A DNA stretch of 64,000 nt, taken from NCBI GenBank assembly GCA_002269645.1, contig NIVC01000250.1:1-64000 (forward strand). Reading direction: 5' to 3'. Origin of the DNA: Macrostomum lignano. Taxonomy: Eukaryota. Below the pieces are notes generated by a model. It searched no databases. It saw only the letters and a program-made list of their open reading frames with translations, and was not told the DNA's origin. Both the position numbers and the translations under genes were made by a program. Positions 28,256-44,843 of the stretch are shown in pieces. The stretch's first letter is position 1. Each line of letters begins with the position of its first letter.

Positions 28256-28459
28256 CCAGCCTAACACCTGGTAGCCTCACCCGCTATTTATTTAGCTCCA
28301 TACAGACCCGTCAACTGATGCAACCTTGTGAAATTCAACGATAAAAAGATATACAAATACGCTACTAATCTACTGATAGTAAAAACATGGGACTTTCAGC
28401 AATTATTAAAATATTTTTTATGATGGACCCTAACGAGCATAAAAACGTTACCCATATCT

Positions 28460-28880
28460 GTTAGACACAAATATTACCTGCTAGACAGGAATAATACGTG
28501 TTAGACAAGAAATATACCAGTTAGACAGGAAGTATACCTGTTAGACAGGAAGTTTACCTGTTAGACAGGAAGTATACCTGTTAGACAGGAAGTATACCTG
28601 TTAGACAGGAAGTATACCTGTTAGACAGGAAGTATACCTGCTAGACAGGAAGTATACCTGTTAGACAGGAAGTATACCTGCTAGACAGGAAGTATACCTG
28701 CTAGACAGGAAGTATACCTGTTAGACAGGAAGTATACCTGTTGGACAGGAAGTATACCTGTTAGACAGGAAGTATACCTGTTAGACAGGAAGTATACCTG
28801 CTAGACAGGAAGTATACCTGTTAGACAGGAAGTATACCTGCTAGACAGGAAGTATACCTGCTAGACAGGAATAATACTCT
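28460..28880. repeat. 20-bp repeat CTGTTAGACAGGAAGTATAC
   Basis: Direct reading. Confidence 0.95.
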
Positions 28881-28946
28881 ACATGCAAATCTTTACTTTA
28901 AGTAGTAAAACTAGCAAAAATGTAGTTTTATCAATCCAAACGCTAC

Positions 28947-29095
28947 CTTTCGATCGCCCCGCAGCAGCAGCTTGTAGATGCCCCTGACGGGGAACGGGGC
29001 CAGGGCTTCTCGACGGCTTTCAACTAGTTGCATCGCCTGGCTGTAGGCTGAGCTGGCCCAGCGCTTTGCCAGCTGGCTGCCTCCGATGCTGTCAC
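28947..29095 (-). CDS. TMEM245: TMEM245 exon 4 (…ESRREALAPFPVRGIYKLLLRGDRK)
   Basis: cttag|GT acceptor and AAG|gtagc donor. Phases fit the neighbouring exons; resembles the TMEM245 P.P..G...LL...D.K motif. Confidence 0.8.
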
Positions 29096-29139
29096 CTAAG
29101 GGGAGGGGCGGACCAGTGAACTGTCTTTGAGCTGTGAAA

Positions 29140-29392
29140 GTCTATCCTTGTAGAGGGTAGCAGTCTATCCTTGTAGAGGGTAGCAGTCTATCTATGGAGT
29201 AGAAGTCTATCACTCTATGGGGAAGAAGTCTATCACTCTATGGGGCAGAAGTCTGTCACTCTATGGGGCAGAAGTCTGTCACTCTATGGGGCAGAAGTCT
29301 GTCACTCTATGGGGCAGAAGTCTGTCACTCTATGGAGTAGAAGTCTGTCACTCTATGGAGTAGAAGTCTGTCACTCTATGGGGCAGAAGTCT
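29140..29392. repeat. 23-bp repeat GGGCAGAAGTCTGTCACTCTATG
   Basis: Direct reading. Confidence 0.9.
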
Positions 29393-29433
29393 CAGGCAGA
29401 AATCAAAAAACATTTTCAACTTATAAGTCGCAC

Positions 29434-30015
29434 CTAAAGTCCGCAGAGCCACAAAAGCGGCCACAAAGGGCAGCAGAGACAGGGTCCAGGGCCTTGTCCA
29501 CGCGTACACCAGCGCGTGGCCCCACAGCAGCAGCACAAAGAAAGTCTTGCTGCTCCGCGACTGCTGCTGCTGGCGCCGCTGTTTCTGTCGAATCAGTCGG
29601 TCGGCATTGACGCCGCAGCTCATGGATCGGGAGACTCGGCGCCTCGCCTGCGGCAGCGGCGGCGGCGGCTGCTGCTGCTGGCGAACTGCAGGCGTCGAAG
29701 TGCCACCCGAAGGTGACGCCGCGTCCACATTGTCGTCGTTGCCGCTCGAAACAATCGGCTGAAGATTCTCGTCGGCTATTGCCGTCTCCTCGGTGGAAAG
29801 CTGCTGCTGCTGCTGTTCTTGAGGAGTTTCGTCCGGTAGGTCGACGGGGTCATCGTCGGACTCCGACTCGCCCGTTGCCGCCGATGCCGCCACTGCTGCA
29901 GCGGTTGACGGCGAGTTGTTCGACCCGACCAGGCTCAGCAGGGAGGCGAAATCGTCTGCAGAGTTGAAGGTCAAGTGACGTGCAGTTCTCAGCGATGGAG
30001 GCTGTGAGCTGACAC
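29434..30015 (-). CDS. TMEM245: TMEM245 exon 3 (low-complexity loop, then FFVLLLWGHALVYAWTRPW TM segment); 5' boundary uncertain (30015 or 30024)
   Basis: Open frame with phase-1 acceptor ctcag|GT and donor TTA G|gtgcg. Length 582 fits phase 1 to phase 1. Confidence 0.7.
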
Positions 30016-41356: not shown

Positions 41357-42775
41357 TTGCTTGAGCTTTGGCGTCTGAACTGCTATTTAAGCTCTACAGA
41401 CAGGCTTTGATGCAATGAAAAGAATCTTACCACTAAAATGCACACATCATGCTCCTATCATCTACTTCAAGTAGAAATACACATTTTTCATTCCAGATTT
41501 CGCAGAAAAACTACATTTAGAAACTATACTTGGCGTCTGAATAATTCTGATCAGATGCAATCTGAAATTTATAAAAGTGATGTAACCACGTCTTGGTCGC
41601 GGGATGAATTGGGGAAATTTTTCGAAATGTCCCCGATCCCCTTTGACCGAATGGGCAGAGCTGTCGAGACTGGGCCGGGTCTCCCTGAACTCCCGCTCTG
41701 ATTGCGACCCCTGCTGTCTCTGTTCCGTCTCCCACGCAGCCACACTTGCCTTTCTGGAGCCCCCCTTTTTTGTGCACCTCGCCTGCTCCCGCATTTCTCA
41801 TGCGCCTCAGACCATTTATCATGTATTTCTCGTGTTTTTCCCGTCTTTTTATCATGTTCTTGCACGGTTTTCTTGCGCTGTCCCCTCCTCGTCCCGTGCC
41901 TACTTAGAATATCGCTTGTGCAGATCGTCACCCCATCTCCCTTTAGGATCCCAAATGGTGACGCAAGGCTCCTGACCCCTCCCTCACCCCGATGACTCAT
42001 CACCCACCTCTTGCGCAACCTTTCTCATGCTATTGATCACTTCCCAAGATTTCTCATGTGACAGCCTCCCCTCCTCCGCTTCCATTTTTCTTGTTTTTGA
42101 TTTTTTTGTTCTTCTTTTCGCACCTAATTAGCACCTTTTTTCTCAATGTTTGCTTTTCCATTTTTCTCGATTCTCCCCAATTATCCTCGATTTCCATTTC
42201 CTTTATTCTCGATCTGATTCCCATTGTTCTCAATGTTGCTTGCGCAACACTTCTTCGACCTCCCGCTGGGCTTATTTTCCCATCAATCCCCGTCCGGATT
42301 GCGCATGTTTCCCATTTCTCATGTTGCTATGCCGTTCTTATATTTCTCATAATGACTCATTCTGACGTCATCTTCCCGGCGGCCAATCAGAGTAAGGGAG
42401 TCATGGAAACGACCTTGGAGTATTTAGAGGACTATTTAAGGAAGTGATTTCGGCGTGACAACCTGCAAAGTTTTGGCCTTTGGTCTTCTGCAAGACCTTC
42501 GCCCAGCTTGGCTTCTCGTTCTATCTTTGGACTTGCCGTCGTCAGACGCCGGTCTGAACCCCCCCCATTCGTCTATAGGACGAACCTCTGCCAGCCCGCG
42601 GTCTGATACCGCCTAGATTCCTCAGCTCCCCAAGCGAGCTTATCTACCGGCCCGCGGTCCGATACCGCCCAGCATCCTCAGCATCGCCTGAGCTACATCA
42701 GTGCCTCGTCGCTTCAGCGCATCGCCGCTTCACTACCTGCCTGTCCGCAGCCAACAGCCGCCCTCGGTCACTCCA

Positions 42776-43001
42776 TCGCTCTCTCTCTCTCTCTCTCTCT
42801 CTCGCTCTCTCTCTCTCTCTCTCTCTCTCTCTCTCTCTCTCTCTCTCTCTCTCTCTCTCTCTCTCTCTCTCTCTCTCTCTCTCTCTCTCTCTCTCTCTCT
42901 CTCTCTCTCTCTCTCTCTCTCTCTCTCTCTCTCTCTCTCTCTCTCTCTCTCTCTCTCTCTCTCTCTCTCTCTCTCTCTCTCTCTCTCTCTCTGTGTGTGT
43001 G
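42776..43001. repeat. (CT)n microsatellite followed by (GT)n
   Basis: Direct reading. Confidence 0.98.
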
Positions 43002-44160
43002 CAGCTGCCGTTGAGTTCCTGTACTGATTTTTGCTCTAATTGCCTTTGCTTATCCGGGGTCGGCTTATTTCCCATTGCTTGATTAGAGAGCTGAGCCAAT
43101 TATGTACCTTGCTGTATTTTACTCACTAGTGAAGCCGCCTAATTGCCTGTTAATTTCGCCTAAGGGCCTAATTATAAACAATTACTAAAACAACTCATTT
43201 TTCACACCTTCACCATCATTTCACCCATGGCTTGCTGAGCCTTTCTCCCTGGGTGGCAAAGCATAAGGAAGTTTGGGTAAGCTAATGGCATCTCCCCGTG
43301 CAAAGCCCGCCTGTGTGTGCGTGCTGCGGGTCCGTGTGTGCGTGCAGTAGAGGTAATTAGCGTGTCTTGGCACAGAATGGCAGCAGGAAGGTTGCAACAC
43401 CCTGCTCACGCGTCCCTTCGCCCTGAGCAATCTAAACTATAGCTGGTACATGTTCATCTCGCACTACTCTTAATAATTGAAGCCGCAAGTCCGCCTCGCT
43501 CACAGCCTCAAAGGATCTCCTGCTGAGAAATCCTCCAGATTGATCCCAGAGTTCCCGAGTATGCCCCAAGCAGAGTCCCTGTACTCGGCTGCATGTGTCT
43601 CCCCTGTTAGCCTAAACCCCCTGGTAACCAATCCAGGCGGGGCTCTAGCCTCGAAAGGTCTGGTCGTAAGATCCAGGTGCGCCAGTTCACATAGAGTGGT
43701 GGCAGCCATTCGGTCATGCCATGACCGAGTGACCAACTATTGCACCTTGGCTACAGGTGGGGTCCATGTGGGTCCTTGGCCCTCTGGTCACAAAGCGCTA
43801 CCAAAGCTATCAATCATGTGGGCGGGACAGTCTGGTGCTGGAGGTCCGTCAGGTCATTGCCCGGTCATAGGCAGCCTACGGTCATTGCCCCCTATGGTCA
43901 TACGCCCCCCTTCCCGTGGAGCAGACGGTCATCAAGGGCAGTTACATCAAAAGGCCAACATCATATTTTATTTCTCATAAACTGCTTCATAATTATTACA
44001 GTAAATAATTCTACTGTAACAATTCCACTATAAAGCATAAACTAATTTTACTTTCACTAAAATGAAACAATGCAAATTTAAGTTACTAAAAATCTTTATT
44101 AATGTTAGACAAATTATGTAAACAGTGATAGCAATTTTAAGCTCAATGAAAATTCTGAAT

Positions 44161-44251
44161 AAAAATTTCGGCTGTCAATTTCAAGTGTCGATGGGATGGA
44201 ATTCATGGCTGTGTAAGCTCGTTATAGCTAACCCTTCGACTCCGGACCGCC
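44161..44251 (-). ncRNA. Y RNA-like gene, copy H (shortened promoter spacing)
   Basis: GGCGGUCCGGAGUCGAAGGGUUAGC…UCCCAUCGACACUUGAAAUUGACAGCCGAAA-U5. TATA remnant only about 13 nt upstream. Confidence 0.7.
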
Positions 44252-44568
44252 GAACTGCAACTGCTGTTTAAACTCCTCAATGCGCAGCTCATGCAATCCG
44301 GCCAATTTCTCCAATAAATAATTCTACACATACGCTATTAATTTACTTACAGTAGAAAATGGCAAACTATGCGTAGAACATTTTGAAAGAATGTAACATT
44401 GAAAAAATTAACTAAAAATTGTTTGAAAATCTGCTGGTCAGTGTTGGACTTTTGATCTTGTCAAGGATCAAGTAGTCCTTGTCATTCACCTATTCATGTA
44501 CATTTACATGTTGAATTCTCGTTTCCTAAAGCCCAGAAATATTTGAAAACTTTTGGATTAAAGCCAGC

Positions 44569-44643
44569 AAAAAAGCTGGTCAAGTGAGTGCCAATGGGGT
44601 ATTTTGAGAGCAATTCAGTTAACCCATCGACTCCGGACCAGCC
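44569..44643 (-). ncRNA. Y RNA-like gene, copy I (GGCUGGUCCG type; 1 loop substitution vs D)
   Basis: GGCUGGUCCGGAGUCGAUGGGUUAACUGAAUUGCUCUCAAAAUACCCCAUUGGCACUCACUUGACCAGC-U6. TATA-like box at about 44667-44675. Confidence 0.9.
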
Positions 44644-44843
44644 CGGCAGTTGGGGTGTCCGACTGCCTATTTAAGCCTGAACAATGCTGCAAGCTAAGCC
44701 TAGCTAATTCGCTGCGCTGTACGCTTTTGTGGCGAAATTCATCGTGCGGATTCTATATAAAATTGGAGTAGCGCACATTTCGTCTACTTTAAGTAGGAAA
44801 ATAGAAATGTCGATTGGATTTTTTTCGTTTGTGCAATAAAATT

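Follow-up and report, generated by a model that had tools for sequence, protein, structure and literature searches.

The stretch of DNA analysed here, hereafter the window, comprises positions 1 to 64,000 of contig NIVC01000250.1 from the flatworm Macrostomum lignano (assembly GCA_002269645.1). Nine homologues of Y RNA and stem-bulge RNA (sbRNA) genes were found in it, all on the minus strand and between positions 28181 and 44643, and eight of the nine have upstream a 15-base-pair (bp) palindrome, which reads TCTACT-N3-AGTAGA on the gene strand and is usually preceded by TT. The palindrome had been pointed out in an earlier note on this sequence, to which the present analysis adds that the genes and their promoters lie on the minus strand, and that three further copies of the palindrome are present (41054-41066, 36189-36201 and 28893-28905).

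The Y/sbRNA gene cluster

An Rfam scan of the window matched six of the nine genes, here designated A to I in order of position, to RF01656 (ceN72-3/ceN74-2, nematode stem-bulge RNA), with scores of 38.9-45.4 bits against a gathering threshold of 38; genes A and H scored 30-31 bits, below gathering, and B was not reported. Nematode sbRNAs are considered Y RNA homologues (PMC4726728). The vertebrate Y_RNA model (RF00019) fell short of its cut-off of 38, at 27 bits. When the nine copies were made into a covariance model, this model, run with its filters off, detected exactly these nine genes in the window and nothing else above 16 bits, and the minus strand has nine occurrences of the anchor GGTCCGGAGTCGAT. 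Aligned to the family consensus, the genes match it strikingly well in both halves of the stem (GGUCCGGAGUCGAUGGGUUA...CCCAUCGACAC..ACUUGACC, also written GGUCCGGAGUCGAUGGGUUA...CCCAUCGACAC.CACUUGAC). All nine are predicted by minimum free energy (MFE) folding to form a terminal stem and a variable loop. In the alignment and the MFE folds, a GGUCCG...UUGACC helix of this stem pairs the 5' and 3' ends, its columns are invariant and the internal loop is variable. A run of five to eight T residues (T5-T8) directly follows the 3' arm of the stem in all nine genes. Judged by these family matches, folds and T-runs, the nine loci are real Y/sbRNA homologues.

The 5' ends are of two types, GGCGG (A, B, C, E, G and H) and GGCUGG (D, F and I). 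Gene A (28181-28255), which ends in T8, scored 78.3 bits with the covariance model made from the cluster and 30.4 bits with RF01656, and folds as a stem-loop; gene B (36545-36637), ending in T6, scored 63.7 bits with the former model and carries the GGTCCGGAGTCGAT anchor. The RF01656 scores were 42.9 bits for C (37045-37122; 96.2 bits with the cluster's own model), 44.5 bits for D (37515-37587), the sole gene without a palindrome, 42.6 bits for E (39092-39170), 44.5 bits for F (39564-39636), whose distal promoter is intact, 38.9 bits for G (41255-41356; fold z = -4.1), 31.3 bits for H (44162-44251) and 45.4 bits for I (44570-44643). The loop of gene G holds a (GATA)5 microsatellite (41296-41320), and its RNA is lengthened to about 98 nucleotides (nt). 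Gene H, with a variant TATA-like box (TTAAACAG) placed only 12 nt from the RNA, the palindrome arm AGTAAA, a GTCGAA variant and a lower Rfam score, is probably degenerate. Its distal promoter has an identity of 0.83-0.93 to that of E, against only about 0.67 in the RNA body.

Self-comparison of the window with BLAST revealed that the unit containing C and D (36965-37676) is 97.6% identical to the unit containing E and F (39012-39730), E and F being recent duplicates of C and D, respectively. Genes H and I are an older copy of the same gene pair, at 77-91% identity; B and G pair with each other at 85% identity, and A stands alone. These groupings define four diverged paralogue subfamilies, and on this evidence the region is a cluster of Y/sbRNA genes made by tandem duplication.

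No other small-RNA gene was recognisable in the window with Rfam, permissive E-values included, and ARAGORN found no tRNA. A 2009 survey of schistosomes detected no Y RNAs (PMC2770079), and no published report of Y RNAs from Macrostomum or from flatworms was found in the literature searched. The cluster documents nine Y/sbRNA genes in a flatworm and would make M. lignano one of the first flatworms with demonstrated Y RNAs.

Promoter elements and the upstream palindrome

Upstream positions were counted from the inferred 5' end of the RNA, that is, the 5' G of the terminal stem. The element closest to the genes is a TATA-like box, which the earlier note had placed at about -24 to -33 and which was indeed found as an exact TTAAATAG in seven of the nine genes, spanning -24 to -34: in B (36664-36671, -27 to -34), C (37146-37153, -24 to -31), D (37611-37618), E (39194-39201), F (39660-39667), G (41383-41390) and I (44667-44674), all on the minus strand. 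Variants are present in A (TAAATAAATAG, 28284-28294) and H (TTAAACAG, 44264-44271). From the end of the box to the 5' G there are 23-26 nt in seven genes, 31 in A and 12 in H. Between the TATA-like box and the start, eight of the nine genes have another conserved box 1-5 bp 3' of the former, reading (T)CAGTCG, or CAGACG in G (37135-37140, 36653-36658, 37604-37609 and equivalents).

At the position of a proximal sequence element (PSE), the six GGCGG-type genes have a GAAATT-N5-7-ATTGCAT block, 17-29 bp upstream of the TATA-like box. In C the block reads GAAATTT-N5-ATTGCAT (37174-37192, -52 to -70), and its equivalents are at 28318-28336 in A, 36688-36707 in B, 39222-39240 in E, 41410-41429 in G and 44291-44309 in H, again on the minus strand. 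In B, C, E and G its ATTGCAT or ATTGTAT falls within -51 to -60; A has TTGCAT at -63 to -68 and H has ATTGCAT at -40 to -46. Genes D, F and I have other sequence at this position, and the GAAATT/ATTGCAT form of the block is absent from them. The TTGCAT-like middle element described previously is clear, then, in the GGCGG type, but the GGCUGG type has only TTGCAG (-44 to -49 in D and I) or ATGCAG (in F). The shared tripartite promoter proposed for these genes is too uniform a picture: the middle element differs between the two types, and D has no palindrome.

From this organisation we infer gene-external, type-3-like promoters serving RNA polymerase III (Pol III), in which the TTAAATAG box, of TATA type, would set the start site 23-26 nt downstream and transcription would stop at the T5-T8 run, just past the 3' arm of the terminal stem. 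Internal promoters with tRNA-like A and B boxes, as in the C. elegans UM2 and trypanosome U6 genes, were considered and rejected: in the sequence downstream of the palindrome a partial likeness to an A box occurs in one subfamily only, there is no B box, and ARAGORN reports no tRNA.

The eight gene-linked palindromes were confirmed, together with their positions and plus-strand spacers. On the gene (minus) strand the element reads TTTACT-atc-AGTAGA upstream of A (28369-28383; plus-strand core 28370-28382, spacer GAT; -115 to -127), TCTACT-taa-AGTAGA upstream of B (36737-36751; core 36738-36750, TTA; -101 to -113), TCTACT-gag-AGTAGA upstream of C (37224-37238; core 37225-37237, CTC; -103 to -115), TTTACT-tat-AGTAGA upstream of F (39775-39789; core 39776-39788, ATA; -140 to -152), TCTACT-tga-AGTAGA upstream of G (41461-41475; core 41462-41474, TCA; -106 to -118), TCTACT-gta-AGTAAA upstream of H (44342-44356; core 44343-44355, TAC; -92 to -104) and CCTACT-taa-AGTAGA upstream of I (44783-44797; core 44784-44796, TTA; -141 to -153). 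The copy of E (39272-39286; core 39273-39285) also has the plus-strand spacer CTC and lies at -103 to -115. The distances reported before held as well, both for A, B, C, E and G (-101 to -127) and for F and I (-140 to -153). As the TATA-like box of H is just 12 nt from the RNA, compared with 23 in C (a shortfall of 11 nt), the palindrome of this gene lies nearer, at -92 to -104.

The palindrome is strongly over-represented in the window. The exact form CTACTNNNAGTAG (CTACT-N3-AGTAG) has seven matches against 0.09 expected, and the relaxed form YTACTNNNAGTAR has 13 against 0.24. With up to two mismatches, the 15-bp form TCTACTNNNAGTAGA has 16 matches against 3.1 expected, and with up to one mismatch it has 10, nine of which are inside Y-gene promoter sequence. 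Those made by minisatellites aside, it is the commonest palindrome of the 5-N3-5 kind in the window. When the same arms were searched with spacers of 0-7 bp, each length other than three occurred at most twice, in keeping with chance, and the spacer of the gene-linked copies is always 3 bp. The geometry of two inverted hexamer half-sites with exactly three free bp between them fits a site for a symmetric dimer. A reading of the palindrome as an RNA hairpin was rejected, as its arms measure 5-6 bp and it is located outside the transcript, about 70-110 bp upstream of the TATA-like box. No published description of the palindrome, nor any of the Macrostomum U6 promoter, was found in the literature searched.

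Possible role of the palindrome

Conservation was compared between the four subfamilies in ungapped alignments anchored on the palindrome. The arms (12 positions) had an identity of 0.91 between subfamilies, compared with 0.40 for the flanks (±30 bp) and 0.28 for the spacer. Among the seven copies that differ in sequence, departures from the column majority numbered 4/84 in the arms, 9/21 in the spacer (Fisher p = 4e-5) and 28/84 in the adjacent 6 bp on each side (Fisher p = 2e-6), p-values that overstate the significance since the copies are paralogous and the counts therefore not independent, although both tests agree in direction. The distal promoters of different subfamilies have no similarity detectable by BLAST, yet the palindrome is kept in all four.

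These figures bear on the possibility that the palindrome is functionless, a remnant of an ancestral promoter retained by chance and spread by duplication or gene conversion. All copies do derive from one ancestral unit in a single cluster, and the pairs C/E, B/G and F/I are 85-98% identical around the site, leaving effectively four independent lineages. However, chance retention accounts poorly for arms that are 91% identical between subfamilies when the flanks are at about 40% (ungapped) and the spacer at 28%. Gene conversion would have homogenised the spacer too, yet it differs within subfamilies (TAA and TGA, TAT and TAA, GAG and GTA), so that gene conversion is not what keeps the arms alike. 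A functionless remnant is consequently regarded as highly improbable.

The distance from the palindrome to the TATA-like box is 67 bp in B, 72 bp in C, E, G and H, 75-79 bp in A and 109-110 bp in F and I. This is relevant to a second explanation, in which the palindrome would be a core element of PSE type, either the site of this lineage's SNAPc equivalent or a second essential core box. In line with such a role, it is the best-conserved upstream block apart from the TATA-like box, little of the sequence at the usual PSE position (-45 to -70) is conserved from the GGCGG to the GGCUGG type, and two different subfamilies (C, E and H in one, G in the other) share a gap of exactly 72 bp. Core elements of this kind, however, keep a fixed distance to the TATA box, and a gap varying between 67 and 110 bp makes a spacing-critical core PSE unlikely and an upstream activator site the better reading. 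Moreover, the known PSEs are asymmetric, bind one SNAPc complex and lie at about -50 to -65 (PMC3499247, PMC2527325), and a palindrome at -100 to -150 fits neither their symmetry nor their position; the proximal promoter of D, in addition, is perfect without a palindrome. Overall, a core role appears very unlikely.

When the E-F and H-I units were aligned, conservation began 20-55 bp upstream of each palindrome and continued through the promoter and the gene, while the intergenic spacer was unalignable; the palindrome therefore lies at the distal edge of a constrained promoter block. That the homology of related units stops 16-55 bp past the palindrome, near the unit ends, would also be expected if the palindrome were a protein-binding or structural site for another process, such as recombination or transposition (duplicating the units), a boundary or insulator, or the regulation of a neighbouring RNA polymerase II gene. 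Orphan copies without genes, a copy in a promoter fragment between perfect 105-bp inverted repeats, typical of foldback DNA or DNA like miniature inverted-repeat transposable elements (MITEs), and the minisatellites or insertions that adjoin the element at A and D point in the same direction. On the other hand, the breakpoints of the recent duplication (36965-37676 to 39012-39730) miss the palindromes, the element is always inside the conserved block and never at its very end, and outside Y-promoter sequence the window has degenerate copies only. Both arms are also strictly kept across old, diverged subfamilies, which a continuing function at each gene explains better. A role outside Pol III transcription thus seems unlikely.

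The reading favoured here, to which we assign a probability of about 0.6, is that the palindrome is a distal site for a dimeric factor on a type-3-like promoter, acting as an upstream activator. The earlier note had proposed a distal or PSE-type element for a dimeric factor; the distal option is favoured over the PSE-type option by the variable gap (67-110 bp) and the location at the distal edge. The palindrome would be a putative site, kept by purifying selection, for a homodimeric or two-fold symmetric DNA-binding protein, and would most likely act as an upstream activator, a functional analogue of the vertebrate distal sequence element (DSE). It would raise the occupancy of the proximal block by the basal machinery (of the SNAPc/TBP/Brf2 type) and not serve as a spacing-critical core. 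The binding of a protein, the symmetry of a dimer, the activating effect and the dependence on Pol III are what we infer from the sequence.

Several observations weigh against a distal activator site. The palindrome is missing from gene D, where the similarity to F and I ends at about -90, and the RNA-coding sequence and proximal promoter of D are the same as those of F despite this loss, the effect of which is not readable since the C-D/E-F duplication is too recent (97.6% identity). Three copies of the palindrome have no Y-like gene downstream according to the covariance model run with its filters off, and all copies are paralogues from one 16-kb cluster. The sbRNA genes of C. elegans, which are the nearest relatives to have been characterised, need only about 100 bp of upstream sequence, a 245-bp fragment being no more active than a 140-bp one (PMC2527325). 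Finally, a scan with a degenerate Y/sbRNA pattern found four metagenome contigs with Y/sbRNA-like genes that have TATA and PSE-like boxes and no such palindrome. These contigs are eukaryotic and short (JAAUXW010035179.1, JAAUYA010322383.1, JAAUYA010279514.1 and JAAUYA010252626.1), and their genes read GGTCCGGAG...TGGGTTA...ACTTGACC followed by a T-run; at about -30 they have a TATA box and, at about -60, a CACCAGT(G/T)T box common to them. Their use for the comparison is that of an outgroup only. An exact 20-mer from the 5' half of the flatworm RNA had no match in the metagenome scan.

Gene D can be regarded as a natural variant of F that lacks the palindrome. From about -90 outwards, its promoter has given way to a GC-rich insertion of some 860 bp (37677-38530), which holds a perfect 22-bp minisatellite (37723-37913, 8.7 copies), and past this insertion the sequence found upstream of the palindrome of I resumes.

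In vertebrates, the DSE consists of an octamer and an SPH/Z-motif, for Oct-1/POU2F1 and ZNF143/Staf, and lies at about -200 to -250, whereas the flatworm element is a 15-bp inverted repeat with a 3-bp spacer at -100 to -150. Neither the octamer ATGCAAAT nor an SPH/ZNF143 motif was common to the flatworm copies, in which the palindrome is the sole shared distal block; a DSE of the octamer/ZNF143 type was rejected because its motifs are not conserved across the copies. In other respects the flatworm promoters resemble the type-3 Pol III promoters of vertebrates (U6, 7SK, H1 and hY), being gene-external, with a TATA-type box at about -30 and, in most copies, a block at the PSE position (PMC3499247, PMC4726728). 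They also have in common a further conserved element upstream at a flexible distance, termination at a T-run and Y RNA as the class of product, and by this likeness the flatworm promoter would be expected to use SNAPc, Brf2 and Pol III.

The sbRNA promoter of C. elegans, UM3, is bipartite, combining a PSEB-like sub-motif and GTATA in a stretch of about 100 bp (Li et al. 2008; PMC2527325). The flatworm genes are like UM3 genes in encoding homologous RNAs (RF01656) in short Pol III-type units that end in T-runs and form multi-copy clusters, and in having a TATA-like box and a box upstream of it. In contrast to UM3, which is described without a distal palindrome, their box is TTAAATAG and not GTATA, and beyond -100 there is a further conserved element; judged by the text motifs 'GTATA' and 'PSEB', the architecture thus appears to differ from that of UM3. 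Since the relatives in C. elegans and in the metagenomes have no palindrome, and no octamer or ZNF143 motif is common to the flatworm copies, the element is lineage-specific as far as seen.

Steroid-receptor elements and the P3 sites of paired-class homeodomains are response elements of the inverted-repeat IR3 type, on which dimers contact successive major grooves. The likeness of the palindrome to them is one of architecture only, with two inverted half-sites of 5-6 bp and exactly three unconstrained bp between; we know of no half-site of those families (AGAACA, AGGTCA, TAAT) that AGTAGA matches. In a more specific version of the distal activator reading, a dimeric regulator that is specific to flatworms or expanded in them, for example a nuclear-receptor-like or other IR3-binding factor, would recognise the palindrome as its response element and control the Y-RNA family and not U6, 7SK or other SNAPc genes. 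This is considered unlikely; if true, the supply of Y RNA would be a regulated output, tied for instance to stem-cell proliferation.

Type-3 Pol III promoters outside vertebrates are usually described as TATA and PSE only. If a flatworm has a symmetric distal element under strong constraint, it would follow that upstream activator sites on such promoters evolved independently, with a different factor. Macrostomum lignano is a flatworm model with stable transgenesis, and a Pol III promoter this compact and defined (about 120-160 bp, starting at a precise G and stopping at a T-run) could serve for the expression of guide RNAs or hairpins.

Palindromes without genes and other features of the window

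The extra palindrome at 41053-41067 (core 41054-41066, minus strand) lies within a TATA-less 105-bp copy of the promoter of G (40983-41087). The copy shares 95% identity with 41390-41495; it ends at the TATA box, no gene follows, and perfect 105-bp inverted repeats (40878-40982 and 41088-41192) enclose it. The whole of 40878-41192 has the appearance of a promoter fragment captured by a foldback or MITE-like element, or of an assembly artefact.

Two other palindromes on the minus strand are orphans. The one at 36188-36202 (core 36189-36201) reads CTACT-gta-AGTAG, with sixth arm positions that do not fit; ATTGCA-like and TTTAAG-like sequences lie about 37 and 57 bp downstream of it, and no Rfam match follows. 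The other (28892-28906, core 28893-28905) reads CTACT-taa-AGTAA; 2 bp after it comes ATTTGCAT, a perfect sequence of the octamer type. The orphan may be what is left of a promoter that was destroyed. This orphan lies just upstream of a 20-bp minisatellite (28454-28871, 20.9 copies), itself located 72 bp upstream of the palindrome of gene A. A near-palindrome, TCTACTTATAGTACA, directly followed by CTACAGTAGA, was found at 58765-58790, with TATA-like runs about 75-90 bp downstream on the plus strand; no RNA gene was recognisable after it with Rfam at E-values up to 10. The possibility that the copies at 36189, 28893, 41054 and 58765 head degenerate Y-like or other RNA genes was rejected, as the covariance model finds just the nine genes and Rfam nothing credible.

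Among the open reading frames (ORFs) of the window, one of 679 amino acids (51316-53355) is 100% identical to M. lignano BOX15_Mlig028982g1, a CDY-like protein with chromodomain and enoyl-CoA-hydratase (ECH) domains whose gene is recorded on contig NIVC01000118.1 of the assembly; by this match the window is nuclear DNA of a free-living flatworm. Protein homology searches with this gene, with a neighbouring exon and with the ECH domain alone returned no M. lignano paralogues. Exact look-ups of two ORFs that overlap genes C and D gave no match. A 639-amino-acid ORF (60391-62310) encodes reverse-transcriptase and RNase H domains, consistent with a retrotransposon, and an ORF on the minus strand (25586-26068) encodes an inositol polyphosphate kinase domain. 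The window is also rich in minisatellites.

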